A program made the translations under genes and the position numbers. Shown piece after piece: positions 2,831-59,212 of a stretch of DNA of 64,000 bases; within the stretch, counting starts at the first letter, position 1, and the number at the start of each line of letters is the position of its first letter. The stretch is from Octopus bimaculoides (lineage: Eukaryota). The notes beneath the pieces are model-generated. The model was not told the origin of the DNA. It saw only the letters and a program-made list of their open reading frames with translations, and ran no database searches. The stretch is from assembly GCF_001194135.2 (NCBI RefSeq), contig NC_069003.1, positions 17,569,991-17,633,990 on the forward strand, in the 5' to 3' direction.

Positions 2831-2832
2831 GG

Positions 2833-3078: not shown

Positions 3079-3079
3079 T

Positions 3080-3566: not shown

Positions 3567-3599
3567 TCTGCAAATGAACAATCTGGTGTCTTTATTTCA

Positions 3600-4470: not shown

Positions 4471-4489
4471 TCGCTGAGTACTCCACAGG

Positions 4490-4712: not shown

Positions 4713-5199
4713 AGTCTCTTAACCGTAGAGAAAAGGAGTGAATCGATAGAGACAGAAAAAGGAAAGCCTAAGTCATTTACAATGACAATTAGACTGAAAT
4801 ACGCTCAATCTTTTCTAGCTTCTTTACTTTTCACAATGAAGAAGCGGTAAAGACATTTAGCAATGAATAGAGGGAAAGTCTTTCAGGTGTTTACGTTTTT
4901 ATTCTGGGAGTTCTAGAATAATCGAGTGTTAGTTCTCTCTTCATTGCCCCATCACCGGTACTTATTCACCTTCTTTCATAGTTCTTTATGTCTTTTAGTT
5001 GTGAGGGGGGAGACCATGTTTGTTTTTCAGGCATGTTTAATGCTTTCTCTACAAACTACAAACAAGCCTGCCTCCCTAATGCAAATTCCAAATGGGGTAC
5101 AGCTGTGAAAAGAACCCAGAAACATGGGTAATACCCCCTACAAAATAATAATAATGATGATGATGATGATGATGATGATAATAATAATCCTTTCTACTA

Positions 5200-5358
5200 T
5201 AGAAACTGGGGGAAAGGGAGCTGGTACTTATTTCACAAATTCTGAAAAGATGAAAAGCAATGTCAACCTTAGCGGAATTTGAACTCAGAACGTAGAGATG
5301 GACAAGTTGCTGCTAAGCATTTTGTCCAGCAAGCTAATGATTCTGACAGCTTGCTGCC
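5200..5358 (-). mobile_element. tRNA-derived SINE, family C (partial)
   Basis: Matches 56194-56414 (GTTCTGAGTTCAAATTCCGC...TTTCATC). Confidence 0.6.
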
Positions 5359-6357
5359 ATGATGATGATGATGATGATGATTCCTTTTCTTCAGAAGTTC
5401 AGACAAAATTTATTTATCTTACTACAACATCAACATGGTTAACAATAGTTAAGTTAATCCTTTTGATACCATGCCTCCTCAGACCATTCCCCTTGGTTCC
5501 AGAATACAAGTTCCTGGTTTTAAAGTGATCTAAATTAAAACTTCTTTCATCAAAATTTCATGTTAATTTATGTTACAAACATCAGCTTAATAATTGTTTC
5601 AAATTTTGGCACAAGACCAGCAACTTTAGGGATTACATTCACTCAGGTAATAGACTGATACCTTACTATATTAATCACAAAAGGATGAAAGGACATTTGT
5701 AACAAGAATGTAAGGAGCTGGAAGAAATGCTGCTAAGCATTTTGTCCAATGTGCTAATACCTTTTCCAGCTTGTTATCTTAAATAATAACAAAGTTATTT
5801 TACTAAAGTTTTCATTATTTTCAAAATTCATTTTCCAGCACTAGGCTGGAACTGATTTACTGCTGTGTACACTAGAGTCACATGAAATCAAGTCTAAACA
5901 ATTGAACTTGCAACCTTGTGATCATAAACCCAACATCTGAACCACTAGGTATGCACCTTCACATCCTACATACATATATAACTAAATAGAGAGATATACA
6001 AAATTATACACACAAACATAAAAGAACTATATATATACATCCATACATATATATTTAGGTAGTAAAGAAAGAAGTACTCAATACCATAAAGTAGAGTCTT
6101 AACTTTTACTCCAGCAATTACCAACAGTTTTGTTGTGTAACAGCCACACAGTTCTTCAGGCTGTTATGTTGGAATAAAGTCTAAAACTCTATTCCAGCAC
6201 AGACACACAAATATGTATACACACGCACACATACATTGGCACTTACACAAATATGTATATACCCATATATAAATATATGTCTACATACACACAAAAACAC
6301 ACTCTCCGCACATACATATAGATGGATAGACAGATATATATATATATATATATATAT

Positions 6358-7313
6358 NNNNNNNNNNNNNNNNNNNNNNNNNNNNNNNNNNNNNNNNNNN
6401 NNNNNNNNNNNNNNNNNNNNNNNNNNNNNNNNNNNNNNNNNNNNNNNNNNNNNNNNNNNNNNNNNNNNNNNNNNNNNNNNNNNNNNNNNNNNNNNNNNNN
6501 NNNNNNNNNNNNNNNNNNNNNNNNNNNNNNNNNNNNNNNNNNNNNNNNNNNNNNNNNNNNNNNNNNNNNNNNNNNNNNNNNNNNNNNNNNNNNNNNNNNN
6601 NNNNNNNNNNNNNNNNNNNNNNNNNNNNNNNNNNNNNNNNNNNNNNNNNNNNNNNNNNNNNNNNNNNNNNNNNNNNNNNNNNNNNNNNNNNNNNNNNNNN
6701 NNNNNNNNNNNNNNNNNNNNNNNNNNNNNNNNNNNNNNNNNNNNNNNNNNNNNNNNNNNNNNNNNNNNNNNNNNNNNNNNNNNNNNNNNNNNNNNNNNNN
6801 NNNNNNNNNNNNNNNNNNNNNNNNNNNNNNNNNNNNNNNNNNNNNNNNNNNNNNNNNNNNNNNNNNNNNNNNNNNNNNNNNNNNNNNNNNNNNNNNNNNN
6901 NNNNNNNNNNNNNNNNNNNNNNNNNNNNNNNNNNNNNNNNNNNNNNNNNNNNNNNNNNNNNNNNNNNNNNNNNNNNNNNNNNNNNNNNNNNNNNNNNNNN
7001 NNNNNNNNNNNNNNNNNNNNNNNNNNNNNNNNNNNNNNNNNNNNNNNNNNNNNNNNNNNNNNNNNNNNNNNNNNNNNNNNNNNNNNNNNNNNNNNNNNNN
7101 NNNNNNNNNNNNNNNNNNNNNNNNNNNNNNNNNNNNNNNNNNNNNNNNNNNNNNNNNNNNNNNNNNNNNNNNNNNNNNNNNNNNNNNNNNNNNNNNNNNN
7201 NNNNNNNNNNNNNNNNNNNNNNNNNNNNNNNNNNNNNNNNNNNNNNNNNNNNNNNNNNNNNNNNNNNNNNNNNNNNNNNNNNNNNNNNNNNNNNNNNNNN
7301 NNNNNNNNNNNNN
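6358..7313. other. Assembly gap (N run); others at 10145-10177, 36480-37263, 41885-41930, 51379-51388 and 61033-61340
   Basis: N runs, mostly flanked by (AT)n microsatellites. Confidence 0.99.
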
Positions 7314-7354
7314 AAACACACTATTTCTTTCTTTCTTTCTCTCTCTCTCTCTCT

Positions 7355-7592
7355 CCTTCATGCGCGTACGCACAGATTTGACTTCGCCATGTCAACAAAC
7401 TTCAAAATTGGTAAAAGTTTATCGATTTTTACAGGTATATGCGGGTACCTCTGAGAGAGAAAGTTGATGAAAATGCACATAGGGTCATTCCGAATCTTCT
7501 CCTAAAATTGGAGCGACATGCGTGCTAATTTGTGGACGAGCATAAACTACATTCACGTACACACACACATCCTCTCTTTTATATATATTGAT
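7355..7592 (+). mobile_element. Non-autonomous Helitron/HINE-like repeat (tentative)
   Basis: Ends in (CA)n then TTTTATATATATTGAT, resembling Helitron-derived 3' ends. No coding evidence. Confidence 0.3.
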
Positions 7593-7859
7593 ACATACAT
7601 CCACACACACATATATATATACAGATTGACAGATAAATATGTAGGTAGATAGATAGGTAGATAAATAGGGATAGATAGATATAGAGATAAATGAATACAG
7701 AGATAGGTAGATAGAGAGATAGATAGATAGATATATAGATATTTGGATTATTCCCTGGAATTAATTGATTCGTTTTGAAAAGCTGAAGAACTGGATGTAA
7801 AAAATTCAGAGAGCTACTATCTCTGCTCACAACAAAGGAATTCCCTCTGTTAGTAAAGG

Positions 7860-8260
7860 ACAAATTGTATGATGCCTATATGTCAAGTGCAATGCTGCAT
7901 GTTAGCATAACATGGATTTAGAAAGTGGAAGAAGAGTGAGAGTTGACAAGAAAGAAAGCAAGAATGCTCAACTATATGTTAGTATACAAGGATGACAGCG
8001 CATAAATAAGCCGAGAGAAAAACTAGGTATGAAAGGATTAAGACATGGGGTGCAAGAGAGGAAACTGAGCTGGCACAGACAGGTATATCATGTATAAGAA
8101 GGATGGTAGTTGGGTAAGAAGTGGCAAGCAACCACAGTAAAAGGAATTTGCAGAAGAGGAAGACCAAAGCAGGCACAAAAGAAAGAAGTTTAAGCTGACC
8201 TCTGTCGGCAGAACGTCAAGAAGATGACAAAGGATTATGACAAGTGGCAAGATGGTAAGC
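7860..8260 (+). mobile_element. RTE LINE C-terminal fragment
   Basis: Decayed LYDAY..AML and RGRPK motifs, homologous to 26980-27290. Confidence 0.5.
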
Positions 8261-8656
8261 AGGAGAAAACCCATTAAAGCATAGGAAAACAGACAAGAAA
8301 AATGGTGATGATGATGATGGCAGTGGTGAGGTATATACTGAGATTATATATATACACATGATTGTATAAAAGATGCATGAGCATATTAGATGTATTTCAA
8401 TTTCAGAGTATTCAAACATAGGGCTTGGGGTGACCTTTTGAGACATTGGGGGGGGGGGGAGTCCGCACACACACACACACATACTCTCTCTCTCACACAC
8501 ACACATTTGTTCAGTGCAGTTTAAACATTAAATAACATGACAACCAGTATTTAGAACTTCATGTGCCTTCCTATTCATGAAATTGTAGTTCTCTTGTTTG
8601 TTATGAATCCTGTATTTGAGAGTTACACAGAGTGTATGTAGAAAGTACAATGAAGC

Positions 8657-9024
8657 ATGAGAGATTGTTTAAAAGATATTTAGTTGCACCATCTTATGTA
8701 TGTTCCATTAATATAAGGTAACTATTAGTTACATAATGTAAATTACATAATCAACACTTATCATCAAATTGTCAGAGATATGTAACTATTATATGTAACA
8801 TTGGATTGAAAAGATCTTGACATAATTAACAGTTACTCACCATCTCCATGATGGTTGATTTGTCAACATCTTTTCAATCCACTTATGTTACATTTAAAAG
8901 TTACACATCTCTGATGATTTGACAATAAGTCTTGATTGTGTAATTTACATTATGTAATTGATAAACACCTTATGTTAATGAAACCTAAGTAATGTGGTGT
9001 AAATATATATCATAAACAATCTCT
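8657..9024. repeat. Imperfect fold-back (MITE-like) with arms of about 165 bp
   Basis: 8657-8825 is the reverse complement of about 8857-9024 (e.g. TTACATAATGTAAATTAC / GTAATTTACATTATGTAA; GGATTGAAAAGAT / ATCTTTTCAATCC). Confidence 0.8.
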
Positions 9025-9942
9025 TTCATATATATATATATATATATATGGTAAATGATTTCTACTACATCCTTAAATTGACCAATGCCTTGCAAGTGAA
9101 ATCTGGTAGGTGGAAACTGTACAGAAACCTGTTGTGTGTGTGTGTGTATTTATGTGTCTTCACAATGTGATCCTGTGAACAAAAACCAGTGACATTGTTT
9201 AAGCCATTTGTACACAATGTCCAATAGCTCAGTGGTTTTGCAAAAAAAAGAAAGCTGGTAACAGGAAGTACAACCAGCCATAAAATACTGTCTCAATAAT
9301 CCCATCCAACCCATGCCAACATGATAAAAAAAAAAGATGAATGTGAAAATAATGAAATATATAGCACGTTTCATCACAAGGTCCAGTACCTTGTTGGGCT
9401 AACTTGTGTGTCTCAATGACTGTCAGAGCTATGCCATTGGAGTGCAAACTACTGGTAAGGTCTCTTGTGCAGGACAGGTCAAAGGATACAGGCCAGACAA
9501 ATATGGATCACCTCTTCTTAGATGTGAAAATGGGTTTGCATAGGGCCAACACACCTACCTAGACAAAGCAAAGTTATAGAAGAATTGATGATAATAACAA
9601 GACCTGAGAGGAAAGAAAGTCCAGAGTTGGGAAGAGTTGTTAGTGGTCAATGCTCCATAGGGAGAGAAGGGAATCATGTAAATACAAATCACATTATAAA
9701 TGTGCATGACCATCGTCATCATAATTTTAAAAGGGAAATATGATATATTCATAATGTGGTGTAAATAAGCGTCCAAGGCATATTTTTTCTTTCCAATATA
9801 CCACAAAGACCTACCTGAACTGAGTTTATATTCATGAAAGAGTTAACTAGACTCCCCACATTTATAGATTAATTTCACCATCAGCTATGATGATTAATAT
9901 TTCTGTTTTATCAAAGATAGCATATTGTAAAGCAGCATTTAC

Positions 9943-10111
9943 CTTGACAAGGACACGTCCCTTGAAGAATTCAGGTGAGGGTAAACACTGCCTGATGACA
10001 TCAACAGGCTCCACATATAATCTATCTCCAAAAACTGATGTAATATACTGAGACATTTTCTGTTGCTGCTTTAAGCTACAATGGTTCTCAAGGCAGACTA
10101 TCACAGGATAG
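9943..10111 (-). CDS. PLCL: PLC-like exon I (169 nt: YPVIVCLENHCS...LPSPEFFKGRVLVK)
   Basis: ttctttcag|C ... AAG|gtaaat. End of the X box. Confidence 0.95.
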
Positions 10112-10769
10112 CTGAAAGAAGATATGTATATATATTTATATAAANNNNNNNNNNNNNNNNNNNNNNNNNNNNNNNNNTATATATATAAGGTCGTTTGTGT
10201 GTGTGTGTAAGTGTTTCTGTGTCTTCATGCTGCGATCATGTGAACAAGAACAGTGACATTATTTTAAGCCATCAATTCGTACACAATGTCCAATAGCTCA
10301 GTGGTTTTGTGAAAAAGGTTGATGGCAGGAAGTGCATCCAGCCATAAAATACTGTCTCAATAATCCCATCCAATAGATGTACAAAGGTTCACACACAAAT
10401 ATACATGCAGGTGTGGCAGGGTGATTAAGAAATTTGCTTCTCAGCCACATGGTTTTAAGTTCAGTTCCATGGTACAATGTCTCGAGCAAATGTCTTCTGC
10501 TATACCCACAAATCAATCAAAGCTTTGTCAGTGGATCTGGTAGACAACAACTGAATGAAGCCCATTGTGTATGTGTATACATACACACACACAGTTTTAT
10601 GCCTCCTTGTCTTGATATCTTACAAAATGTACTATAGTATTAAGACCATCACCATTATACAATGGAATATAGAATAGCAGTAATGTACTAAAGCATTTAC
10701 ACCATCAAAGTCACACTATGGTATATAGATGGCAGTCTATCAAGTCTGAGAAAGATGGTTCTGCAATTT

Positions 10770-11020
10770 TTTGTTGAACAACCTGTACAAATGATTTGCT
10801 TTATAGTGATCAAATGTATGTGCTGCACATTAGCTCATTTGCTCCATCAAATTGACGTTGCCTGAACAGATGCATGGTGTGCCACATGTCAGGTGTCAAA
10901 GTGATCAGAGAGCAACACAAGATGAAGTTTTTTGCTCAAGAACACATTGATTCCCGGATTGGTCAGTGCAAACTCATCTCGTGATCATGGATACAACACC
11001 TTAACTAGTAGGTCATGAAC
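10770..11020 (-). mobile_element. tRNA-derived SINE, family B
   Basis: Reverse complement of the 23030-23290 type. Confidence 0.55.
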
Positions 11021-11079
11021 CCTTACAATATGGTATATAGAACAGCAATAATGTACTGAATTTGAGAATAATTTCTTAC

Positions 11080-11200
11080 CTTGATAATTCAAAGCCATAT
11101 TTGTTGATGGTCTCAATGACACTTTTAAATGGTAACTTAGAAGAAAGGGTTCGTCCATGGTAAACTAGGGGCTCATCATCCGGTCCATCCCAACAGTCCA
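11080..11200 (-). CDS. PLCL: PLC-like exon H (121 nt: [22 protein letters not shown]...GFELS)
   Basis: ctctctctag|TG ... CAAG|gtaaga. X-box motif DCWDG...YHG. Confidence 0.95.
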
Positions 11201-11521
11201 CTAGAGAGAGAGAAACAGTTTGAGAATTCTTTCAGGTCATTTAAGTGATTTTCTTGTGACCAAATTTTTAACAAAATGTGTTTCAATTCATTTTGAAAAT
11301 AATCAAGAGTTTGCAGGAATTTAATAGCATACCTGGTGCTATCATTTATTAGGATAATCATCCCAGGGTTTGTAAAAGAACTTAGATGGTTCACATATAC
11401 AACAACGGAAGACTTTAATTTGAATATTAAAGTCAATGAAACTACCAGCTTTATGTCACAGAATCAGAAAATGTCTTTGCTAAGTTGGAATCAAAAGGAT
11501 TAGAGGATTAATTAAAGAACT

Positions 11522-11716
11522 GAGTAGGCAAGGCTTTGTGGTAAGAAGCATGCTTCCCAACCACATGGTTCCAGGTTGTCCTACTGCATGGCACCATTTC
11601 CACTTTAGCCTCAAGCTGACCAGAGCCTTGCGAGTAGATTTGGTAGAGAGAAACTGAAAGAAGCTAGTCATAAGATCATCATCAACATCTAACACCTGTT
11701 TTCCATGCTGGCATAG

Positions 11717-11756
<40 letters not shown>

Positions 11757-12822
11757 TCTGATCAATAAGTATCCGGACTATTGCCATAGTAATGAAGCTA
11801 AAACATGCAGGATGAAACCTCTTGGCACAGATTGACCTTGAACTCTGCTGTGCATGCACAGTAAGTTTTAACGTTGTAGCTCACTTCCACTGTCTACAGC
11901 AATGCTTGGAATGAAGGTGTCTAGCGTGTGATCGTCACAATGACCATGACAGGGAAAGTTGAGCAGAGAATCTGTGTCAAATTTTACCAAAAGCTTGGCA
12001 ACAACTGCTCAGAGGCCTATGCATAGTTTTCAAAACGTTTTCATCGTTCTCGACACAATCAAGGAGATCTTGTGCAACTGAAACCCGAGTGTTTTTTTGG
12101 TCAGCTGAAAGCAGTTTTGGCACAACTTAGCAGACACGCATCTCATACCCCAAATCTTCAGTGATAATGGACTGAACTTAAACCATAACTAATCTGCACA
12201 TCCTCTGATAACTCACGGATGGTGATTTGATAATTTCCCCTCACAGCTGCAAGCACATCTGTGATGTTTTTCTCAGTTCTGTCAATATCAACATTTTTTT
12301 GGTCATCTTAGAAACATCTGAACCACTCATACACTTGTGTGCAGCCTCTGAGCAGGAATTGCCATGACAACTTTCTTTGTTGTGGTCAATGCGACAATCA
12401 CACACTACATACCTTCCTTCCAAGCACTGCTGTAAACAGCAGAAGTAAGCTAGAATGTTAAAACTTCATGTGCATGCACAGTGGAGACCAAGGTCACTCT
12501 TTGCCAAGCAGCTTTACTCTGCATGCATTAGCTTCGTTACTATGGCAACAGTCCAGATACTTATTGATCAGACAACATAGATATATATCTGAGTGTGTCT
12601 TTGTGTTTGTATTTGTCCCACCTCCACCAGTTGACAATCAGTGTTGTTGTATTTACATCCCTGTAACTTAGCAGTTCAGCAAAAGACACCAATGCAATAA
12701 GTACCAGGCTTAAAAAAAAAAGTACTGGGGTCGATTCATTCAACTAAAAGTTCTTCAAGGCAGTGCCCCAGTATGGCCGTAGTCTAATGACTGAAAGAAG
12801 TAAAAGATAAAGGATAAGATAG
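11522..12822 (+). mobile_element. SINE family A copy split by an RTE tail and a mariner-derived fold-back element
   Basis: Head 11522-11670; body and tail resume at about 12590-12822. Confidence 0.65.
11751..12579. mobile_element. Non-autonomous mariner derivative with about 155-bp inverted ends
   Basis: GTCTGATCAATAAGTATCCGGAC at 11756 and its complement ending at 12573. Transposase N-terminus (MTGKVEQRICVKF) begins at about 11938. Confidence 0.75.
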
Positions 12823-13452
12823 TTTAGTATTGTGATGTTAGAATTAGGGGCTGATATTTATCTCAACAAGCAATCACACTTATTTAGAAAATTGATTACT
12901 ACAACTTTGAAGCATAGGGTATAATCAACCTCAGGACTTGACTGATAATAATGGGAATGAGAGATAAAATTGACAACAGCAGAATTTGAATTTGGATTGA
13001 GAAGAGCCATAATAACTATGAAAGGCATTTTGTCTGACACACTAAAAATTTTGCAAGTTTATTGCCCTACAAAAATATTAACAAAGAAACAAAAAAAAAA
13101 AAGACGTTCTTGCTGAAGGGTGATAGGCAAAGTAACAATTCTGCCAGCTCCCCTCCTTCAGTATTTGAAAATATTGGTTTCAGCAATATCAGGGAAGTGG
13201 TAGATCAACTACATGAACCCCAGCATTCAACTGGTATTTATCTTATCAACTCTGAAAGAAAGGATGAAAAGTAAAGTCGACCTCGGAGAAATTTGAACAC
13301 AGAATGTAAAGACGGATGAAATATCGCTAGCATTTTGCCCAGTGTGCTAACAATTCTGCCAGCTTGCCATCTTAGTATTTGAAAATATCGATTCTTTGTA
13401 AGAAGTGCAGGACCATTTTTTTGTAGGGGGAACAGACTGTTGATAGGATTAA

Positions 13453-14370
13453 CTCTTTTGTTAACCATATTTCTACTGTAAAACATTGACTTTGTTTCAA
13501 GTAATTTTGAAATTAATGCAGAATTTAGTAAAATACCTCAGTCATTAAAACCCTTCTGATACTAAATCACCCTGGTTCTTTGACACAAATTTCCTGTTTT
13601 AAAGTGATCTAAATTAAACCTCCATCCATTCAAATTTCATGTTAACCCGTTAGCATTCAGATCACTCTGTCAAATGTAATACTTATTTTTTTTCTTTAAC
13701 TTGTTTCACTCATTTGATTGTGGCCATGCTGGAGCACTGCCTTTAGATGAACAAATTGACCTGAGGACTTATTCTTTGTAAGCCTAGTACTTATTCTATC
13801 AGTGTCTTTTGCTGAACTACTAAGTTACAGGGACATAAACACATCAGCATCAGTTGTCAAGCAATGGTGAGGGACAAACACAGACACACAAATGCATACA
13901 TATATATATATAATGGGTTTCTTTCAGTTTCTGTCTTCCAAATCCACTCAAAAGGCTTTGGTCAGCCTGATGCTATAGAAGGAGACACTTGCCCAAAGTG
14001 TCACACAGTGGAACTGAACCCAGAACCATGTAGTTGGGAAGCAAACGTCTTACTGTACAGCCACTCCTGCACCTATTCATATTGTTTTAACTTAATCATG
14101 TATTATCTCATAGCTTTGAGATTTCAATGATATGACTTTATAGTTTAATTTCAGAATAATAATGTAGGGTAGGTGTGAGAAGCCAGAAGGGGTTAATTTG
14201 AACAAAAAACACAATAGAATATTTGGGCCAGATATGGCTGATTTGAATATTAAAGGGTTAATTGATGCTCTGAATACAAGCTTAATAATGGCAAAATAAT
14301 TTTACTAATCTTCATTATTTTAGAATTAATCAAAACAAAGGTAGTGTGTCTCAAAAGAAATGCGGTAACA
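13453..14370. mobile_element. Nested TTAA-type (piggyBac-like) MITEs with an internal SINE
   Basis: Outer MITE 13453-14370. Inner TTAA-CCC...GGG-TTAA MITE 13646-14257. SINE A (minus) at about 13690-14075 inside the inner MITE. Confidence 0.6.
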
Positions 14371-15800
14371 TCATCATCATCATTTAATGTCTATTGTCCA
14401 TGCTGGCAAGCTACACCAGATTCTAGTTTGATTTAGTGTGGTTTCTACGGCTGGATGCTCTTCCTAAACCCAACCACTTTACAGAGTGTGCTGGGTGCTT
14501 TTACATGGCACCGCAATGGATGCTTTTACATGTCACCACATGGGTGCTTTTACACGGCATCGCACGGGTGCTTCTACATGGCACCACCACGAGTACTTTA
14601 CACCACCAGGAGGATCAGTTCTAATGCTTCTGCTGTGAAGTGTGGGTCTTCTTGAGTATGGCAAGATGCTAGATATCTCAGTCCTTTGTCATCTTGCCTG
14701 AAAGGTTCAGCATCCAAAGGTTGTTCTTGAGTACTTGATCCTAAGTCTTCCATCCAGTTTGAGAGATCAGCACTTCTTTACGGAGCTATCGGCATCCATC
14801 CGCATCTCATGACCAAACCAGCACAGTCTTCTCTCTTGCACACAGCAACCAATTCCTCTTACACTTAACTTCTCTCTCAGAACACTGGCACTCTGTCAAA
14901 CATGTACACTTACATTACATATCCAGTGGAGCATACTAACCTCGTTCCTTTCTAACCTTTGCATGTCCTCTGCATTCAAGGCTCATGTCTCACTACCATA
15001 TAGAATTGCTGTCCGTATACATGCATTATGCAATCTTCCTTTTACTTGGAGAGGGGAACCTTTCATGATCAACAGAGGTAACAGCTCTCTGAATTTCCTC
15101 CATCCTATTTTTATTTGAGCTATCATATCCTCCGTGCATCCTCTCCCACTACTAATTTGGTCCCCTAGTATTATATCCTTATGGATAAACAAATACACTG
15201 CAACAGTGTAATAACAATATATAATTGAAACAGATGGAAGTAACCAGATGGAATGTAACAACAATCTTTTAAGAACTAACAATCCAACATGCTAGCTTGA
15301 ATTGTAAATATTGAACTTCGGCTTTGAACTATCAACACACAAACTGAGGAACTAGCACAAACTAGCTCACCTACTCAGATTGCTATTATTTACATGTAGT
15401 GGTCTAGTCCATTTTCACCAGGGGGCATTGTACTCTCGCACAATACCTAGGTAGCAGAAATTATCTACTACTTCTAATGAGCCACCAGGGTATTTGAGAG
15501 AATCAATTTCCCGAGTCTAAAGTTTTTATGAATCATGAAACTACCTTCTTTGATAACCTTCCAATTAACTCACTGCACCTCTTGTGTGTCTATAGCTTAC
15601 ACTGGGTACACCATACAGAGTTCATGCCTACACTTTTACTACAAATTGAACAGGTCCACCTACCTGAGGTGGGTAGGGTCCTCCTGTCAGTTTTCTTGTT
15701 TACTAGATCCTTAGTTTTTGCTAATTTAACCTTGAGGCCCTTAGATTCCAAGTTTTGCTCCACACCTGGAATTTTTCATCTAGCTCTGATAGGGAATCCA
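14370..15800 (-). mobile_element. RTE LINE, 5'-truncated, interrupted at about 15175-15400
   Basis: QIKIGWRKFRELLPLL...LYGSET (14983-15282), PHD-like segment at about 15560-15680, (GAT)n tail at 14370. Confidence 0.75.
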
Positions 15801-16237
15801 CTATGAGGATAACAAAATGGTAAATTAAGCTGATGTTTGGAACATGAATTAGCATGAAATTTTAATGGAAGATATTAAACCAGGTCATTTTAAAAAAGAA
15901 GGTTTGTATCATAGAACCGAGAGGGATTTCAGAAAGGTTAAACATAACTGAATAGTCAGCACTATTGATTGTTCAAGAATGTAATGAAATGACCACTGGT
16001 TGATGACAGTTGCACATTTTTTTCATTTGAGATACTTTCAAATAAAACAGATTATGTGAGGACAGAGGCCTTCCTAAGCAAGATTTTAGAAAAACTACTT
16101 GGATGTACAGTAAAGCATAAATATAATACCTTCATATCTATGCCAGCTTTAGGAGGTGGAATCTCTGTCAATCAATGTTGACTGTGTATGTGCAAGTGAG
16201 GAAAACATGTTTTGAAGAAGACTGGCAGTTGCTCATA

Positions 16238-17725
16238 CACTGCTGAAACGAACTCCTTGCAGACTGATATATTTGACTATTTTTCATTATAGATTCATAA
16301 TTTGCAAATAGAAAAGGATATACAAAAACTTAAAGAAAAGTTTAACATTTAATGCAGAAAATATGCATTGTATGAAAATGAACAATATTCTGCCTGGTCA
16401 AAAATTTAAGACCATGACAAATAAAAAGTTTAAATCTAGTATAAACTATAAAAATTCTGGTATTTATGTCCAAGCTTTCTGGGTCAACAACTGCCAGTCA
16501 CTCCCTGTCTATTTCATAACAACAACAATGGGAAAAGCTAAAATGTTGGTAGATTTTGAACATGGTAGAATTGTAGAGCTCCAGAAGTAAGGTCTTTCTC
16601 AATATGCCATCTCCAGTGAAACTGGCTGGAGTAAAACTGCCATAATAAACTTCTTAATAGACCCTGAGGCATACAGATTTTAAAAAAATCGACAGGCTGG
16701 CTGAAGAAAATTTCACCAGCATTGAGTAGAAGGATTCGACGGGAAGTTAGGGAAGACACTAGTTGATCATCAAAACCAGATTAAGGCACTTATGAATGCA
16801 GAATGCAGCTCAAGGATGATAAGACAACATTTGAGAGAGAGAGGCTTTAAAAATCTTAAACATCTTCAGAGATCTTGTCTTCTTTCATGCCACAAAACTA
16901 CTTGTTTAGAATTTGCTCAGAATCATCAGACCTGTGATGTTCACAACTAGAAGAAAGTTTTGTTCTCAGATAAGAAGAAATTCAACCTTGATGGTCCTGA
17001 TGGTTTCCAACAATATTGGCATATAATAGATATTCTACCAGAGACTTTTTCATCGAGGCATAATGGTGGAGGCTCTATCATGTGTGGGGTACTTTCTCGT
17101 ACAGAGGAACTATGGAGCTTCATGTTGTGCGGGGACATCAAACAGCAGCTCTTGACTGAAGGCCCTCATTTGTGTGGAGAAGACTGGATTTATCAACAGG
17201 ATAATGCTACAATCCATAATGCTCACAGCAAAAGGATTTCTTCATAGTAAATAACATTCATCTTTTGAATCATCCTCCATGTTTTCCTGACTTAAATCCC
17301 ATAAAAAATCTTTGGGGATGGATGGCAAGAGACATTTACAAAAATGGAATACAGTTTGTGGATGCTCTTTGCCAGGCATTCTTCACCTCAAAGCATAACA
17401 TTTATGTTGAGTATACCACAGCAAATTTTTGAAGTTATTCGCAGGAATGGTGGAGCTACTAACAATTGAGTCCCCTTGTTTACTATTTATTCATTGTTTT
17501 CATCTGTTATTTGTCATGGTCTTAAAGTTTTGATCAGGCAAAATATTGTAAGTTTTCATACAATGCATATTTTCTGTATTAAATGTTAAACATTTCTTTA
17601 GGTTTTCATATATCTTTTTCTAATTGCCAATAATGAATCTTTAATGAAAAATAGTCAAATATATCAGTCTGCAAGGAGTCCATTGTGACAGTTTTTCACT
17701 GGTCTTAACATTTTGTCCAGCAGCA
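16238..17725 (+). mobile_element. Tc3-like DD34E transposon with long (about 200 bp) TIRs, decayed
   Basis: MGKAKMLVDFEHGRI, FSDKKKFNLDGPDG, QQDNATIH and PDLNPI motifs. Left 16238-16420 and right 17515-17725 are inverted repeats with TA flanks. Confidence 0.85.
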
Positions 17726-17984
17726 TATATACAAGTCTTGCCTCCACTATGTGCACCCAAATCAGATCCTGATAACACTGTGTAACAAAATTTTAATTTT
17801 TTTTTGGTCTTTGGTCAGTAAGTGTTATTTCCTATTTGCTTCTATCTAGAAATCAAAGGAAATGACCACTATTCCCTTCAAACTTTGCTTTGTGACCTGG
17901 ACATCAATGTTTTGAAACTGACCTATTTTCCATTACATTTCAGACAGATTCAGTGCTGAGTTGCTGAAGCAGAAATATCATTAT

Positions 17985-18160
17985 AATAAATTTTCTGCTC
18001 AGAACCACAGATTTGCTTGTCAATTGCTTCACCTTAACCAGTTGAGCATGACCCTTAGTGGCTGACAATATGTACTTCTCTAATCATGAGCAAGAGTAGT
18101 GGGGGAACATCATAGCCATGTGTTGAGAGGGATTCTTTGGGGTTTGAATTAGTATAACAA
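17985..18160. repeat. Partial copy of an unclassified interspersed repeat
   Basis: Matches 54405-54570. Confidence 0.6.
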
Positions 18161-18360
18161 TAGCAAAGTTTGAAGGAAATATTAGCCCTTTTTCTTATTT
18201 TCTAGGGAAATAACAGTTGCTACTCAAGGACAAAAACTGTGTTACACAGTGCAATTGGCATGTTACCAAATGAAAATAAAGTGCAGACAGATGTTGTGTA
18301 TCCAAATCGATGAAATGAAATAACATGCTGAATGGATAAGAGAGGAAGGAGATATCTCAC

Positions 18361-18446
18361 ATTCAACACATCTGCATCCTTTCTTCAAAACTTTGATATA
18401 ACCTTCTATGCTTGCTGGTCCCTTCAACTGGTCATCCATAAGATAT
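18361..18446 (-). CDS. PLCL: PLC-like exon G (86 nt: [28 protein letters not shown])
   Basis: tgttgtttcag|A ... GAAT|gtgaga. X-box motif GCRCVE. Confidence 0.95.
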
Positions 18447-18544
18447 CTGAAACAACAGAAATTACATTAAAACAACAAAACATTATAACATCCTAGTTTA
18501 GTGGGGGGGGGTTGTCATAAATGAAATATTGGTTTAAAATTTTG

Positions 18545-18890
18545 GTGGAATTTGAACTCAAGGCATAAAGATAGACAAAATGCGGCAAAAAGCATTTTGC
18601 CTGGTGTGCTAATGATTCTGCCAGCTCACTGCCTTAATAATAATAATAATAATAATAATAATATATACTAATGATAATCTTTTCTATTATAGGCATAAGG
18701 CCTGAAATTTGGGGGAGGGGTCTAGTTGATTACATTGACCCCAATGTTCAACTAGCACTTATATAATTGACCCTGAAAGGATGAAAGGCAAAGTCGACTT
18801 TGGTGGAATTTGAACTAAGACCTTAGAGATGGATGAAATGCTGCTAAGCATTTTGCCCAGTGCACTAACAATTCTGCCTGCTTGCTGCCT
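18545..18890 (-). mobile_element. Two SINE family C copies (one partial) about 100 bp from exon G
   Basis: GAGTTCAAATTCCACC head seen twice, with (AAT)n. Confidence 0.6.
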
Positions 18891-19059
18891 ATGTCATAAA
18901 TGAAATATTGATAGCAGGATGCTTTTGATTTTGTTGGTAGTATGGCACCAAAAACTGCTCTACAACAAGAAAGTTCTCTTCACAACCATGTGGATTTTGA
19001 GTTCAATCACACTGCATGGCACCTTGGGCAAGTGTCCTCTACTGTAGTCCTGGTCCAAC

Positions 19060-19319
19060 CAAATGCAGGATAATGCTAATAATAGCCTGAACAGGATAAG
19101 CTACCCCTATTTTGCAGGAAAAAGCGAGATTTCTATACATCTTAAATTTGCAGAAGAATGTGGGGTGTGGGCAGTGTAGCTTAATCGGTCTAGAGCACTG
19201 CGACGTATAATCACAGAGGTGTGAGTTCGAGTCTCATAGCTGGCCGCCAACACTTTTTTCTGAAAAATAGGGGTAGCTTATCCTGTTCAGGCTATATTAT
19301 TAGCATTACCCTGTGTTTG
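19060..19319. mobile_element. MITE with about 60-bp TIRs enclosing a tRNA-like unit
   Basis: 19060-19122 (CAGGATAATGCTAATAATAGCCTGAACAGGATAAGCTACCCCTATTTT) is the complement of 19253-19319. Confidence 0.8.
19169..19249 (+). pseudogene. tRNA-like sequence (Ile-UAU/Met-like) ending in CCA and followed by T6
   Basis: A box TAGCTTAATCGG, D stem GCTT/GAGC, anticodon arm CTGCGA-CGTATAA-TCACAG, T arm GTGAG-TTCGAGT-CTCAT, imperfect acceptor stem, GCCA at 19246-19249. Confidence 0.65.
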
Positions 19320-19344
19320 CAAATATATATATATGTATACATTC

Positions 19345-20830
19345 TCAAGATTCACTGGTCCCACTCCGGAACTATACAGTCATTATATTGACGACTGTAT
19401 TGGTGTGACCTTGCTCTCCCATGAACATCTAGACTCCTTCCTCTCTTTTGTTCAATCCTTCCATCCTGCCCTCGAATTCTCCTGCACTATTTCCAACACT
19501 TCCATCGCCTTTCTCGACATTTCGGTCAGCATTCATCACTCCACTCTCACCACCTCCGTCCACTACAAACACACTGACTCACACTCATACCTCAACTTCT
19601 CCTCCTCCTCCCACCCTAAACACACCAAGTTCTCCATCCCCTATTCCACAGGCTCTGCAGTGACAACCATGACTTTGAGACTCAGTCTCAACTCATGGTT
19701 TGCCACTTCATCCTTCGTGGATATCCCCTCACCCTTGCCAGAGCATGTTCCGTGGACCGTGAACCTGCTCTCTTCCCTGCCTCTCCAACACAACATTCTC
19801 TGAGCCTTCCGGCAACTCCAGTCTGACCCTTCCACTTTGCACATCTTCCCTAACCTACCCCTCCCCTCCTTCAAATGAGCCCACAACTTACGTGACCTGC
19901 TGGTCCACAGTTTCTTCACTAACTCCACCTCCCAATCCGGCTCATTCCCCTGCCCCTGCCCACGCTGCCACACTTGCCTCTACCTCTCCAGCACCACCAT
20001 CCTCACATGCACCAATCGTCGACCCTATCATATCACTGACTCCTTCACCTGTACTTTTAGCAATGTCATTTACTGCATCTCCTGCTATCTCAGTCCTTCT
20101 CTGTACATCGGTCAAATAGGACGCTGCTTGGCTGACCAGTTCGCAGAACACCTCCGAGACATCAAACTCGGCAATGACACCCCTGTCTTGTGCCATTTCT
20201 GCTCTACCGGTCATTCTTTACAGCACCTGTCTGTGTTTGGATTGTCCTTGTACAGGGGCCATCTGGACTCCCATCTTTGCTGTGAACAGGAATTAATCTT
20301 CTCTCTTCGCTCCTTTGCACCACATGGGCTCAACTCCTTTCCCCTCCTCTTACACCCACCTCTCCTCTCTTGCTCTGACACCTACTTCCTCTCTTCACTC
20401 CTACCTACCCCTCTCCCTTCATAGTCATCCCCTCCATCGTTACCCCACCTCCACCATGCCTGTATATCCCATCCCACCCCCACATCATGCCACACCACAT
20501 TGCACCACCCTAGCACTGACCACTTCCCAGCACCTACACCATCATCCACACACCCACACATTAAGGTCACCAGCCCCTATCCACACGCGCACCTTCGTTT
20601 TGGGATCACCACTACTTTATTATCTCCCCTTCTTCCTAACTCTGTCTGGCCATCACCATGACTGACTGCCAGCCACTAAAGCTTTTATTATTCTCTCTCT
20701 GTTTATTTTCTCGTGTTCCTTTCTGTTGAAGAGCGTAGGCTTGAAACATAAAAGACTTTCTCACCTTCCTGAGCATTAAACTAATACACCTGCTTGTTGT
20801 TTACACACCTGTCTTCGTCTTTTGCTTTGT
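19345..20830 (+). mobile_element. Penelope-like element (Neptune-type), RT C-terminus + GIY-YIG + 3' region
   Basis: YIDD...SVHYKHTDSHSYL..SSHP (19333-19640); C-rich linker, YIGQ and FAEHLRDI GIY-YIG motifs (about 19940-20340). Confidence 0.85.
20719..20754 (+). ncRNA. Degenerate minimal hammerhead ribozyme in the PLE 3' region
   Basis: CTTT-CTGTTGA-A-GAGC-gtag-GCTT-GAAA-CATA-AAAG; core A6 and the stem III CpG are mutated. Confidence 0.5.
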
Positions 20831-21844
20831 TTGTAAATTCCAACTATATATATATGTAGATAGATAGATAGATAGACAGGTGGGTAGGTAGTTAGATAGA
20901 GATAGACAGACAGACACACACAAACATACATACATATGTGTTTGCTTCTCCAAAAATCCCTTAACCATAGATGATGATATTGCTATTTCCCCTGTCAATG
21001 GTTCATTTGCAGGCTTCATAGCTTCCAAGACATTAAATAAGAGATCCCCATTTCAAAAACAAGAAAGTGTTAGTGACAAGAAGGGTATCCAACTAAAACA
21101 ATGCTTCAGTAATACATTTGTCTAACCAATGCTAGTATGGAAAAATAGATGTAAAAAAAAAACCAAACAAACAAACAATAAAAAACAAAGAAACTTTTGA
21201 GTTGGAAATGTACTGACCAGGCCCTTCTTTTAGAGTCTCCAAGACTGGTTAGCAGAATGGAAAAAGGGAAGTTAACCTTCAACAGGAAATATGGTTCAAA
21301 TGCTTACAAAAAAATGGACTCCATTAATGACAGATAGTCAAAGACAAGGTAGTGGTGATAGATTAAGCCAACCCACCAAGTCCAGAAACAGCACTTCCAA
21401 TGTATTTCCATAGTTTTTGTCTACAAATTTTCCTCCGAAAGTTTTGGTCTATTCATCACTGTGGTAGAAGACACATGCCCAAGTTTCTGCCCAGTGGGAA
21501 CCAAACAGAATTCTGTGGCTACAAAATAAACCATAACCACCTAGCCATATCTTCATTCCTTTAAAGAGCAGAATTATCTGACAGACCTTCTGATGGGATT
21601 CATTTGTTTCAGTTTGTTTTTACATCTGTTTTCCTATGCTAGCATGAGTTAACATGAGACATTGTTTTACAACTGGATGCTCTTGCTGTCACTCATCCTT
21701 ATCTGTTTTTCAGCTACAGAATTTCTTGTCCCACACATCTATGAAGATGTGAAGCCAGGGGATGATTTGTGGACAGAATTGTAAACATTATCTCTTGTTT
21801 GCAATTTAAAGAGGATTGCAAATTTAAACAAGGACACACACATA

Positions 21845-22540
21845 CCTTTTATCTTTTACTATTTCAGTCATTAGACTGTGGCCAGGCTGGAGCACTGCCT
21901 TGAAGAATTTTCAGATGAATGAATCAACTTCAGTACTTCTTTTTAAGTCTAGTACTTATTCTATTGGTCTTTTTGCTGAACTGCTAAGTTACTGGGACAT
22001 AAACACAGAAATACACATACACGCACACACATATGATGAGCTTCTTTCAGTTTCCGTCTACCAAATTCACTCACAGGGCTTTGGTCGGCCCAAGGCTATA
22101 GTAAAAACATTTGCCCAAGGTGCCATACAGTGGAACTGACCATGAAGCCATATAGTTCAAAAGCGAACTTTACCACACAGTCATGATATTCTAAGTCGCT
22201 TTTATCTAAGAAGTGAAAAATGTATGGTTGGTCTGTTGGTCTGTTCTGTCTTACATTTGGCATGGCTATGTCATAAGAAGTTTGCTTCCCAACTACATGG
22301 TTCCAGGTTCACTCACACTGCATGGCACCTTCCACAAGTGTCTTTAAAAGGCCACCAAAGCCTTGCAAGTGGATTTGGTAGACAGAAACTGAAAGAAGCA
22401 GTTCAGTAAGAGAAACTGATAGAATAAATACCAGGCTTAGCAAAAAAATTAACTACTGGGATTGATTCATTTGAATAAAACTTCTTCAAGGCAGTGCCCC
22501 AGCATGGTTGCAGTCTAATGACTGAAACAAGTAAAAAAAA
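21845..22540. mobile_element. Two SINE family A copies head-to-head (21845-22200 minus, 22255-22540 plus)
   Basis: Family A body and tail motifs in opposite orientations, ending about 35 bp from exon F. Confidence 0.65.
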
Positions 22541-22573
22541 AGGGGGAAATGTTGGTGAAGGAGCCTTACTTAC

Positions 22574-22691
22574 GTGTTATGAGAACTAGCTATGAAATAG
22601 TGACACAGGGGTTGAGACATATCTTGACAAATATTTTTGTGTTCTGGGCTGAAGATTTCACAATCATCTGACAAGAGATAAGCTGTAAAAC
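22574..22691 (-). CDS. PLCL: PLC-like exon F (118 nt: GFTAYLL...[17 protein letters not shown])
   Basis: cttttccag|GT ... AACAC|gtaagt. Start of the X box with the catalytic SSHN. Confidence 0.95.
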
Positions 22692-23393: not shown

Positions 23394-23487
23394 CATCAAT
23401 ACCTAGGTGGCCTTTGGTTCGACCTTCACTGGAAGGTTCATATTTGTTTATTAATTCCCAACATCGTTCTTTTGTAACTCTAGGTTC
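23394..23487 (-). CDS. PLCL: PLC-like exon E (94 nt: [31 protein letters not shown])
   Basis: ttttatcag|GAA ... GATG|gtaagt. Lies within ORF 23323..23541. Confidence 0.94.
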
Positions 23488-24238: not shown

Positions 24239-24845
24239 TCAGGTCATACCATAAGTTCTGTCTGAATTTTGAATAAAGAAAACAAGTGATCAAATGTTAT
24301 ATTTAATTGAAATTTAATCATCAATGTACTTTCCCTGATTATCTATGACTTCCTTCCATCTATTTAGAAGCTTTTTAATCCCATCAATGCAAAACTCTTT
24401 TGGTTTCAAAGCGAAGAACTCTGAAATGTCAGTTGTGACCTCCTCCTGGCTTGCGAAAGTTATGTCCCCCAAATGATTCTGTAAACTATGAAACAAATGG
24501 TAGTTTGAAGGAGCAAGGTCGGGAGAATATGGTGGATGAGGAATTTTTTCCCAACCAAGCTCTTCGATCGTCTGTGATGTGAACTTTGCAGTGTGGGATC
24601 GTGCATTGTCCTGATAAAACATCACTCCTTTTTAATTCACTAAAGCAGGTCTTTTTTTTCTTCAAAGCTTGGTTCAAACGCTCTAATTGCTGACAGTAGA
24701 CTTGAGCATTGATTGTTGCATTAGGTGGTAACAATTCAAAGTGAATTACTCCTTTGCAATCCCACCAGATAGAGAGAAGAACCTTTTTTCCATGAAGTTC
24801 CCTTCTCGGTTGTGGTTGAGCTTTTACCAAGCCACTGTTTACGAC
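24239..24845 (-). mobile_element. Mariner (DD34D) transposon, 3' half
   Basis: KVLLSIWWDCKGVIHFELL, YQDNARSH, HPPYSPDLAPSNYHLF, stop at 24314, TIR TATCAGGTCATACCATAAG. Confidence 0.9.
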
Positions 24846-24849
24846 ATTT

Positions 24850-26020
24850 ATCTACAGAATTATCAGAGTAATAAGCATTCAAAAAAGTATGTATGTATAG
24901 AAATGTATGAATGAAGTCTTTAAGGTTTAAGATTCAAATCAAGGAAATGTAATAATAATTTTAAGCAGTTCAAAACTGAGTAGTGAAATGCAGAATTAGG
25001 TTGGCTGATTGTGAGAAACACATATTGATCGCTTCGCTAAAAACTGCAGGTGGTATGGGTTATTTCCCTTGGGTTGTTTAAATAAAATATTAGTAATATG
25101 TAGTAGAAGATAGAAGGATCCATTGGAGGGGCCCTGTTATTGATTTTTTTTTTCAACAATCTAAGTATGTCACGAGGTTTCCAGACATGAGTTCTACTCA
25201 TGTGTCAAATAAAGTATAAAAGTGATATTGTCTGCAAAAATTAGAAATTGGACACACAAAAAAGCAATATTCAAAGTAATTGAACATAAACAATGAAACC
25301 TGTAAAATATTTCTAAATTTGATAGCTCAATTAGTTTCATGAAAATGTTGTATGAACTGTAAAGAAGCAATAAATATGATTTGTAAAATAAGTGTAAGTG
25401 ATACAGGGTGTCCAAACTGAATGTGGTGTGGAAGTTTGGTTTCATTGTTTAAGAATTTTAAGCATTCAAAATATGAGTTCATTGTATGGGGACACACTTA
25501 TTAAATACGTTCTGGAACCAAAAATTTATGTACTGTCATCAGAAACGTTTAACTGGAAAAATGCAGAATTATTGGAGTTATGGGCATTGAAAGTGTACAT
25601 GCATCAAGAAAGTGCAATAATAAGGTTTAGCAGTTCAAAACTGTGAGTAGTGAAATGCAGAATTAGGTCCGCTGATTGTGAGAATCAAATATTGACGGCT
25701 TCGCTAAAAACTAACAAATGTAAATGCAGCTGCTATGGGTTATTTCCCTTGAGTGTTTAAAAAAAATATTGTGCAGATGCTAGGAGTTATTTCCCTTGGG
25801 TGTTTTTTAAAAAAATAGTTATATGAGGCAGATATAAGGATCCCTTCCAGGGGCCGTATTATCGGTTTTTTTCAACAATCTAAATATGTCAGGACATTTC
25901 CAGACACAAGTTCTACTCATGTGTCAAGTTTCATCAAAATCAATAAAACGATGTAGGAGGAGTTAGCTAACAATGCCACAAACAAACATACACTGATTTT
26001 CTACATATGTAGTAGATATA
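24850..26020 (+). mobile_element. Non-autonomous Helitron-like repeat with an internal duplication of about 260 bp
   Basis: 24960-25210 resembles 25625-25925. 3' end AAGTTTCATCAAAATC...ACAAACAAACATAC...GTAGTAGAT. Second copy (minus) at 52185-52845. Confidence 0.45.
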
Positions 26021-26039: not shown

Positions 26040-27890
26040 TGAATCAAGTGATGAAAGTAATGGATAGGGTCATAATCCAATTAATTAGGGAGAGAGCTAG
26101 CCTAGATGAGATGCAGTTTGGTTTTGTGCCAGGGAGAAGCACCACTGATGCTATATTTCTGGTAAGGTAACTGCAGGAGAAATATCTAGCCAAAGATAAA
26201 GCTCTGTACTTGGCTTTTGTTGACTTGGAGAATGTCTTTGACAGCGTCCCCCAATATCTTATCTGGTGGTCAATGCAGAAACTTGGGATAAATGAGAGGT
26301 TGGTAAGAGCTGTACAAGCCCTGTACAGGGATACTGTCAGTAAGATGAGGGTTGACAACAAATATAGCGAAGAATTCCAGGTAGAAGGGTTCACCAAGGA
26401 TCAGTCCTCAGCTCCCTCTTATTCATCATAGTCTTCTAAGCAATAACAAAGGAATTCAAGACAGGCTGCCCCTGGGAGCTCCTCTTTTAGCTGAATTGCT
26501 ACCAGAACTAGAGATGAAGTTTCAGGTGTGGAAGCAAGGTCTAAAATCAAAGGGCCTTAGAGTCAATGTAGCAAAAACCAAAGTCCTAATAAGCAGGAAA
26601 GAAAACAAATCACAAACCCCTTGAAGTAGATGGCCGTGCTTGCTCTGTAGAAAAGGCGTGGGTAGAAACTCCATAAGATGTACCCAGTGTAAGCTATGGA
26701 CACATAATAGGTGCAGCAATATCAAAGAAAGTTTAACTTGGAAGATAGCTTTTGTGTGGCAGATGCACAGGGGCAATAAACACTGAAGATGTACAGAAAA
26801 CAGATTCCATCACATGTCAAGGGGGAAAACTAGAAGTAGCTGATAGCTTCCACTACCTAGGCGACCAAGTCTGTAGTGGCAGCCCTGAGAGCATAGCTGC
26901 TAGAATAAGGATAGCCTGGGCAAAACTCAGAAAGCTCCTACCTCTGCTGGCAACTAAGAGCCTCTTGCTCAGAGCGAAAGGTAGACTGTATGATGCATGT
27001 GTGCAAACTGCCATGCTACATGGCAGTGAAACATGGACCATGACTGCTGAGGATATGCATAGGCTTGAAAGGAATGAAGCTAGTATGATCTGCTGGATGT
27101 GTAATGTCAGTGTGCATGCACGACAGAGTGTAAGTGTCCTGAGAAGCATCAGATGTGGTATGCAAGAGAGATGACTGCGCTGGTTTGGTCATATGTTGCG
27201 TATGGATGAGGACAGTTGTGTGAAGGAGTGTCACACCCTAATAGTGGAAGGAACCTGCAGAAGAGGTAGACCCAGGAAGACATGGGATGAGGTGGTGAAG
27301 CATGACCTTCGAATATTGGGTCTCACAGAGGCAATGACAAGAGACCGAGACCTTTGGAAATATGCTATGATTGAGAGGACCCCGCAAGTAAAGTGAGATC
27401 GCAGCCATAGCTGAAGCCAATGTTGCATAATTGGCCCATTTAATAGCACTCTTGAAGCAGTGGGCGATATGATGTGCTTGAGAAGACCTGTTGAGTCAAG
27501 TGAAATCGTAGTCGTGGCTAGTGCCGCCTGACTGGCACCCATGCTGGTGGTATATAAAAAGCACCATTCAAGCGTGGGTTGATGTTAGTGCTACCTGACT
27601 GGCTCCCTGTGCCAGTGGCATGTAAAAAGTACCATCTGAACATGGTCGCTGCCAGTGCCCCCTAACTGGCTTCCGTGCTGGTGGCATGTAAAAAACAACA
27701 GCTGAACATGGTCAATGCCAGTTCCTCCTGACTGGCTCCCATGCTGGTAGCACATAAAAAGCACCCGCTACACTCTCAGAGTGGTTGGTTAGGAAGGGCA
27801 TCCAACTGTAGAAACCTTTCCAGTCCTCTGTCAAACCTCCCAACCCATGCCAGCATGGAAAACAGACATTAAACGGTGATGATGATGATG
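26040..27890 (+). mobile_element. RTE-clade LINE, 5'-truncated: RT, PHD-like finger, C-terminus, tandem-repeat 3' UTR, (GAT)n
   Basis: QFGFVPGRSTTDAIF, AFVDLE..FDSVP, YLG, RIRIAWAK, LHGSETW, RGRPRKTW motifs. Several frameshifts. Confidence 0.9.
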
Positions 27891-51388: not shown

Positions 51389-51422
<34 letters not shown>

Positions 51423-56450: not shown

Positions 56451-56461
56451 TATATATAATT

Positions 56462-59195: not shown

Positions 59196-59212
59196 AATAA
59201 ATAAAACAATAA

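Follow-up and report, generated by a model that had tools for sequence, protein, structure and literature searches.

A 64,000-nucleotide stretch of the Octopus bimaculoides genome (assembly GCF_001194135.2, contig NC_069003.1, positions 17,569,991 to 17,633,990; hereafter the window, whose own numbering is used throughout) carries on its minus strand part of a phospholipase C (PLC) gene that groups by sequence with the PLCL/PRIP family and keeps all seven X-box residues of the catalytic set. The vertebrate members of this family, PLCL1 and PLCL2 (PRIP-1/PRIP-2, p130), are catalytically inactive by experiment (PMC12998161; PMC2266627), as a preliminary description of this DNA had stated, and those sampled have lost His356, which is Thr or Ala in jawed fishes and Asn in lamprey. 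The octopus gene has a histidine at this position and thus fails the functional hallmark of the vertebrate PLCLs despite belonging to the same clade. The comparisons below suggest that the full octopus protein is probably an active enzyme and that the inactivity of the vertebrate proteins appears to have arisen later, as an event specific to their lineage.

Catalytic residues in the octopus gene

Residues were numbered according to PLC-delta1, and the set considered here comprises 11 positions, namely the seven of the X box (His311, Asn312, Glu341, Asp343, His356, Glu390 and Lys438) together with Lys440, Ser522, Arg549 and Tyr551. The five X-box motifs named in the preliminary description were all found on the minus strand within the span it gave. 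SSHN lies in exon 6 at 22576-22587, with His311 at 22579-22581 and Asn312 at 22576-22578. CVELDC is split by an intron into CVE at the end of exon 7 (which ends at 18361; Glu341, 18362-18364) and LDC at the start of exon 8 (which starts at 11200; Asp343, 11196-11198). YHG is also encoded by exon 8, the His356 codon being CAT at 11157-11159, while CLENH (10081-10095; Glu390, 10087-10089) and LVK (9943-9951; Lys438, 9943-9945) are encoded by exon 9.

The correspondence of these motifs to PLC-delta1 residues was borne out by alignment with rat PLC-delta1 (PDB 1djg, E=1.8e-65) and PLC-zeta1 (E=1.8e-69), in which SSHN aligned with His311/Asn312, CVELDC with Glu341/Asp343, YHG with His356, LENH with Glu390 and LVK with Lys438. 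An alignment of 77 sequences gave an identical mapping, with 7 of 7 X-box residues kept. Pfam searches with the 312-amino-acid (aa) product of the gene returned PI-PLC-X (PF00388; 208.2 bits, residues 172-312) and EF-hand_like (PF09279; 66.1 bits), as well as EF-hand_1. The motifs and domain scores together are far beyond what chance would produce. Rat PLC-delta1 (PDB 1djg/1djx) has the same X-domain fold signature and all of the catalytic and Ca2+-binding residues seen in the octopus protein, and it is likely to be the appropriate mechanistic model. However, its identity to the octopus protein is only 41-43%, it falls in a different clade, and PLC-delta is without the PLCL C-terminal extension.

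Gene structure and reading frame

Splice junctions read from the sequence and tblastn searches with relatives defined nine minus-strand exons, running from 59261 to 9943, which join in phase into an uninterrupted frame of 312 aa, from PEALDELHQMRDSWLQEMFESAD... to ...PSPEFFKGRVLVK. The product covers the linker that follows the PH domain, EF-hands 1-4 and the X domain of PI-PLC as far as Lys438. Of the eight introns between these exons, the first is AT-AC and the other seven are GT-AG, and a GT donor closes exon 9. The span to which the preliminary description referred, 9943-22691, is exactly exons 6 to 9. The window result itself is an ordinary one, a partial, intact, intron-rich gene.

Exon 1 (59222-59261), the first one visible in the window, encodes PEALDELHQMRDS, part of the linker that joins the PH domain to EF-hand 1; its acceptor reads tttatag/CA and its donor TC/ATATCCTTT (slashes mark splice boundaries), and its peptide matches ...QQMRD(S)W... 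of Mya and Nucella. Exon 2 (47792-47921), which encodes (S)WLQEMFESADSDKSGVITENAVIQLMKKLNCNIHTEKIQQKLK in EF-hand 1, was identified by tblastn to orthologs, by its reading frame, by a gtaaaa donor and by a Pfam EF-hand_1 match. Exon 3 (38151-38263; ELQMNRGERMRGRLNREEFIMLFKEISTRPEIYFLLV(R)) contains the PLCL-type sequence TRPEIYFLLV, shows tblastn identities of 70% to Dreissena and 64% to Nucella, and is bounded by cag/ and /gtgagt. It is followed by exon 4 (29155-29221; YATNSEFMSLEDLQMFVEAEQG), exon 5 (23394-23487; 31 aa + (G)), which is 73% identical to both Dreissena and Mya, exon 6 (22574-22691; 38 aa + (T)), exon 7 (18361-18446; 28 aa), the boundary of which is the same in Lottia, and exon 8 (11080-11200; 40 aa + (S)). 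The series closes, as far as the window shows it, with exon 9 (9943-10111; YPVIVCLENHCSLKQQQKMSQYITSVFGDRLYVEPVDVIRQCLPSPEFFKGRVLVK), after which gtaaat follows. The Lottia ortholog has exon boundaries in common with the octopus gene.

An assembly gap of 33 N at 10145-10177 lies within intron 8 (10112-11079); it precedes the acceptor of exon 9 (ttcag/C) by 34 nt and is noncoding. The join of exons 8 and 9, TCA AG/gtaaga plus C TAT CCT, gives FELS-S-YPVIVCLENHC in frame with no indel relative to the orthologs, and in Lottia DNA the counterparts of these exons are adjacent, with no exon in between. Because the gap is intronic and the junction is in frame and collinear with the orthologs, the gap has no effect on the finding.

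Intron 1 (47922-59221, minus strand, approximately 11.3 kb) belongs to the U12 class with AT-AC ends, as its sequence shows. Its 5' splice site, ATATCCTTT from 59221, corresponds to the U12 consensus, and its branch site, TCCTTAAC at 47931-47938, is positioned 9 nt before the 3' AC at 47922-47923. An AT-AC intron was found at the same codon in the ortholog of the annelid Ridgeia piscesae (L002, 1798-2955), where the donor junction reads ...CGAGACAG/ATATCCTTT, the branch site TTCCTTGAC and the acceptor junction ...CAC/ATGGCTGGAGG. This agreement in type and codon position indicates that the minor-spliceosome intron is conserved between the octopus and the annelid.

These features bear on the possibility that the locus has been decaying as a pseudogene, or that it is an artefact of assembly in which exons were wrongly joined across gaps, which we consider very improbable. 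It is true that the window contains six N gaps, that the introns are full of transposon fragments and that the gene is only partly visible. However, all nine exons are open, in phase, equipped with good splice sites, collinear without indels and 61-69% identical to orthologs; the conserved U12 intron retains a perfect 5' splice site and branch site; and the single gap close to an exon falls in an intron.

As the preliminary description had stated, the Y box lies outside the window. Exons for the Y box, the X-Y linker and the C2 domain were not detectable in 1-9942 by tblastn or by regular expressions (GKKL, acidic linker, SFSE, R[IV]YP, DSSN, NYQT and others), with a 956-N gap at 6358-7313 that could hide one. 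The sequence GKK at 9786-9794 was considered as the start of the next exon and ruled out, as it is in the wrong phase. At the other end of the gene, no PH-domain or KTVSF-type exon was found in 59262-64000.

Lineage of the octopus gene

The preliminary description had placed the gene in the PLCL lineage, and phylogenetic and profile analyses agreed with this placement. Pairwise identities of the octopus protein were 61-69% to gastropod and bivalve proteins, 61% to a sea urchin protein named 'inactive PLC-like protein 2' and 50% to a vertebrate PLCL1-like protein, compared with 46-49% to cnidarian PLCs, 41-43% to PLC-delta, 41% to PLC-eta and 42-45% to PLC-zeta. When a 296-aa model was used as the query, the top database matches were Bulinus 'Inactive phospholipase C-like protein 2' (64%), one PLCL1-like protein from a vertebrate (50% across the full length), a protein from a rotifer, Priapulus 'inactive PLC-like protein 2' and fish proteins with the PLCL hallmark ...IYTGHT.... 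Short queries had given a misleading mixture in which short fragments of delta, eta, zeta and PLCL proteins stood together, the matches being limited to approximately 1.75 times the query length, and longer queries resolved this. The X-Y-C2 region of a gastropod ortholog matched lophotrochozoan orthologs at 783-997 bits, the sea urchin 'inactive PLC-like protein 2' at 742 bits (68%), fish PLCLs at approximately 570-640 bits (55-60%) and PLC-delta4 and delta1 at approximately 500 bits (47-51%).

In a neighbor-joining (NJ) bootstrap analysis of the EF-X region (312 columns), the minimal clade that holds the octopus protein and a fish PLCL was free of delta, eta, zeta, cnidarian and outgroup sequences in 92 of 100 replicates, and the most recent common ancestor of the octopus protein and PLCD1 excluded the vertebrate PLCLs in only 1 of 100. 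The NJ tree of 452 X-Y-C2 columns joined mollusc, annelid, sea urchin, ecdysozoan and vertebrate PLCLs into one clade with 98% support, in which Ciona, lamprey and fish PLCLs fell as well, and recovered separate groups for delta (81%), zeta (100%) and cnidarian/sponge sequences (96%). In the trees, zeta and eta formed separate clades. Profile scores for the EF-X region of the octopus protein were 497 bits for non-mollusc invertebrate PLCL, 383 for vertebrate delta, 372 for vertebrate PLCL, 302 for zeta and 272 for eta. Since the vertebrate PLCL profile performed no better than the delta profile on EF-X alone, the link to PLCL runs through the invertebrate orthologs.

Motif content and the C terminus point in the same direction. 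The PLCL-type motifs reported earlier in the EF region proved to be present, with TRPEIYFLLV in exon 3, and the EF signature TRPEIYFLLV, F(L/V)EAEQG, KYEPS.EG and GFT.YL is held in common with vertebrate PLCL1/2. Vertebrate PLCLs and mollusc orthologs are approximately 58-60% identical in the Y-C2 region and 44-48% in a C-terminal extension of approximately 240 aa. This extension, taken after C2 from the gastropod protein (the Bradybaena C terminus), matched lamprey PLCL2 (48%, E=1e-76) and mammalian PLCL1 (44%, E=2e-65), as well as amphioxus, sea urchin, C. elegans PLL-1 and, more weakly, three sponge proteins; the same query had no match in delta or zeta. The many introns of the EF-X region are a difference between the octopus gene and vertebrate PLCL1/2. 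The invertebrate proteins named 'inactive phospholipase C-like protein 1/2' (Bulinus, Argopecten/Pecten, Lytechinus, Priapulus, Branchiostoma, Oratosquilla and Ornithodoros) and PLL-1 are direct orthologs or co-orthologs of the octopus protein.

Very little probability remains for descent from PLC-delta (or eta or zeta), under which the retention of the catalytic residues would be trivial. The best PDB matches were indeed PLC-zeta1 and PLC-delta1, though no PLCL chain was among the matches, and the vertebrate delta profile scored slightly above that of vertebrate PLCL on EF-X. Against this stand the far higher score of the non-mollusc invertebrate PLCL profile, the higher identity to a vertebrate PLCL1-like protein than to delta, the grouping with fish PLCL in the EF-X replicates and the position of the mollusc orthologs, which carry the PLCL C-terminal extension, within the PLCL clade. 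In addition, distinct delta-like genes are present in lophotrochozoans (Ridgeia P0175 and Helobdella P0209). The chain from the octopus protein through the mollusc orthologs to the PLCL clade is solid for the orthologs, although the C terminus of the octopus gene itself is beyond the window, and on these comparisons the assignment of the octopus gene as a PLCL/PRIP-family ortholog by descent holds.

Several further members of the clade were noted. Molluscs appear to have a second, divergent PLCL-clade paralog (P0335 of Argopecten, P0239 and P0235) that is 45% identical to the octopus protein, keeps the catalytic residues and has the C-terminal extension. A K(K)TVSF motif was found in PLCL members from lamprey, amphioxus, Ciona, leech and C. 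elegans; we take the KTVSF motif in the N-terminal region of PLCL to be a PP1-binding site. The sponge proteins matched by the C-terminal extension are P0386 (Sycon), P0347 (Oscarella) and P0264 (Geodia), with E values of 7e-19, 2e-12 and 1e-10, and the extension may predate Bilateria. The choanoflagellate PLCs P0352, P0389, P0400 and P0404 have long C-terminal tails and intact catalytic residues, and the similarity of these tails to the extension is not significant.

Catalytic residues across the PLCL clade

At the core six positions, from His311 to Glu390, none of the approximately 40 PLCs sampled outside the PLCL clade (delta, eta, zeta, epsilon, cnidarian, fungal and protist) departed from the catalytic residue, and what few changes there were at the remaining five positions came from models that are incomplete or poorly aligned. 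Within the PLCL clade, the sea urchin, scallop, most gastropods and the octopus gene have the full set of residues, whereas it is broken in PLL-1, arthropods, the priapulid and amphioxus. The gastropods Bradybaena, Candidula, Elysia and Nucella, which are 61-68% identical to the octopus protein, keep 11 of 11 residues, including Lys440, Ser522, Arg549 and Tyr551, as do the sea urchin and the divergent scallop paralog. The octopus gene keeps all seven that can be observed in the window, and Ciona savignyi keeps the six core X-box residues with Lys438 changed to Arg. In Lottia, 10 of 11 were seen, seven in the public model and Glu390, Lys438 and Ser522 in the DNA; Lys440, in the next exon, was not read. 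The public Lottia model skips the ENH (Glu390) exon, which is present in the DNA (L001, 22235-22402 region), and is split from an upstream PH-domain model.

Elsewhere in the clade, the substitutions differ from lineage to lineage. Jawed fishes have only H356T or H356A, with Glu390 and the rest kept, and lamprey has H356N, while one gar paralog and one further vertebrate sequence are heavily degenerate. The preliminary description had stated that vertebrate PLCLs substitute both His356 and Glu390; the first part of this stands, but Glu390 is kept in almost all of those sampled. Amphioxus shows N312D, D343V, E390D and other changes, C. elegans PLL-1 shows H311R, N312K, H356N and E390S, and insects, a crustacean, a mite and a tick show E341K. 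The priapulid and the rotifer have D343H, the badly degenerate leech protein has E341K and others, and Ridgeia and Bulinus have E341D. Earlier work (PMC2266627) noted only that a critical histidine is mutated both in mammalian PLC-L and in PLL-1, a statement that fits these residues, although PLL-1 has further changes as well.

The retention of the whole catalytic set in gastropods, bivalves and the octopus argues for purifying selection on it in Mollusca. Because the losses elsewhere in the clade strike varied positions, the intact sets in it are more than mere inertia. Orthologs with intact residues are already public under the homology-derived name 'inactive phospholipase C-like protein'; RefSeq applies 'inactive' to all of these PLCL-clade proteins (P0331-P0342, P0217, P0124, P0123 and others), whether their residues are intact or broken. 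We found no discussion of catalytically intact invertebrate PLCLs in the literature searched, which misses most subscription journals, so that this is not proof of absence.

Repeats and other elements

The DNA of the window is eukaryotic, rich in AT and in repeats, and interrupted by six N gaps, and many CA/TA microsatellites and a recurrent repeat resembling a short interspersed element occur throughout it. Transposon remains in the introns comprise a 219-aa Tc1-like transposase open reading frame, mariner-like transposase fragments, a retrotransposon reverse transcriptase region (YLDD) and several reverse transcriptase fragments of the long interspersed element type; the transposon-related stretches are 39666-40325 and 26752-27174 on the plus strand and 24317-24851, 11980-12465, 186-2500, 56464-56673 and 14770-15291 on the minus strand. 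In intron 6, on the strand opposite to the gene, 19169-19249 (plus) resembles a tRNA-Ile(TAT) followed by a T run. The match is weak (Rfam tRNA 31.2 bits, threshold 29; also reported by ARAGORN), and a partial inverted copy lies at 19060-19124. Either a decayed tRNA gene or a repeat derived from a tRNA may account for this element. At the Lottia gigantea locus (L001, 17800-18760), the first ~15 codons of exon 6 recur in approximately 10 partial copies, which are arranged in tandem just upstream of the real exon at 18726-18851.

Predicted activity and evolution of the family

The reading that we favor, with somewhat better than even confidence, is that the full protein is an active Ca2+-dependent phosphatidylinositol-4,5-bisphosphate phosphodiesterase (PI-PLC) of PLCL ancestry. 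Its gene structure, reading frame, residues and lineage are as described above, and, by analogy with the mollusc orthologs, we infer that its Y box is intact. The full architecture would be PH-EF-X-Y-C2 followed by a PLCL-type C-terminal extension. In such an enzyme, His311 and His356 would form the general acid/base pair, Asn312, Glu341, Asp343 and Glu390 would be the Ca2+ ligands, Lys438 would bind the 4-phosphate, and cleavage of phosphatidylinositol-4,5-bisphosphate would yield inositol trisphosphate (IP3) and diacylglycerol.

Several points weigh against this reading. The vertebrate PLCLs are inactive by experiment (PMC12998161; PMC2266627) and yet have kept 10 of the 11 residues for hundreds of millions of years, ever since vertebrates arose, so residue conservation in this clade may reflect ligand binding or fold stability and not turnover. 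The repeated residue losses across the clade suggest that catalysis is not its core function, and even lophotrochozoans vary, with E341D in Bulinus and Ridgeia and a badly degenerate leech protein. In addition, the parts of the octopus gene for the Y box, the C2 domain, the C-terminal extension and the PH domain all lie beyond the window. The phylogeny is distance-based (NJ) only, and support for the PLCL clade was 56% once degenerate long-branch members and choanoflagellate PLCs were added; the lineage reading relies on the cleaner X-Y-C2 tree set and on the C-terminal extension.

The first of these points would also suit a scaffold. In this main alternative, which we consider less likely than an active enzyme, the octopus protein would be a true PLCL ortholog but a non-enzyme like vertebrate PRIP, binding phosphoinositides or IP3 and keeping His356 for binding or structure. 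The losses in arthropods, the priapulid, the rotifer, nematodes, amphioxus and the leech likewise fit a non-catalytic selected function. Domain swaps of p130 by Kanematsu et al. in 2000 reportedly pointed to inter-domain differences beyond single residues. However, His356, which is changed in all sampled vertebrates, is kept in the octopus together with all of the other residues, and the same is true of several mollusc classes, the sea urchin and Ciona. Furthermore, no common substitution marks an ancestral inactive state; each of the other lineages broke a different residue, as expected from an active ancestor.

This pattern of an intact set in molluscs, an echinoderm and a tunicate and of different broken residues in other lineages suggests that the bilaterian PLCL ancestor was active and that catalysis was lost many times. 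We give about an even chance to the scenario in which the PLCL clade began as an active PLC with a C-terminal extension, at least five or six independent losses of catalysis then affected different residues, and the molluscs, sea urchin and tunicate are still active. The independent losses proposed are those of His356 in the vertebrate stem, of several residues in amphioxus, of His311 and others in nematodes, of Glu341 in arthropods (E341K) and in the leech (E341K and others), and of Asp343 in the priapulid and rotifer (D343H). The suggestion in the preliminary description that residue retention could help to date the switch was upheld in that His356 is kept in Ciona, the sea urchin and molluscs and replaced in lamprey and jawed fishes. 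This distribution would date the loss of His356 to the vertebrate stem, after the split from tunicates and before that from lamprey.

PRIP/PLCL proteins have been studied almost only in mammals, as pseudoenzymes. If the invertebrate orthologs are active and the ancestor was so too, the scaffold functions of PRIP would have evolved on a working enzyme, and the label 'inactive' would be mistaken across much of the animal kingdom, with names needing correction in molluscs, echinoderms and tunicates. The family would then offer a natural series for the conversion of an enzyme to a scaffold, with many independent losses at different residues.

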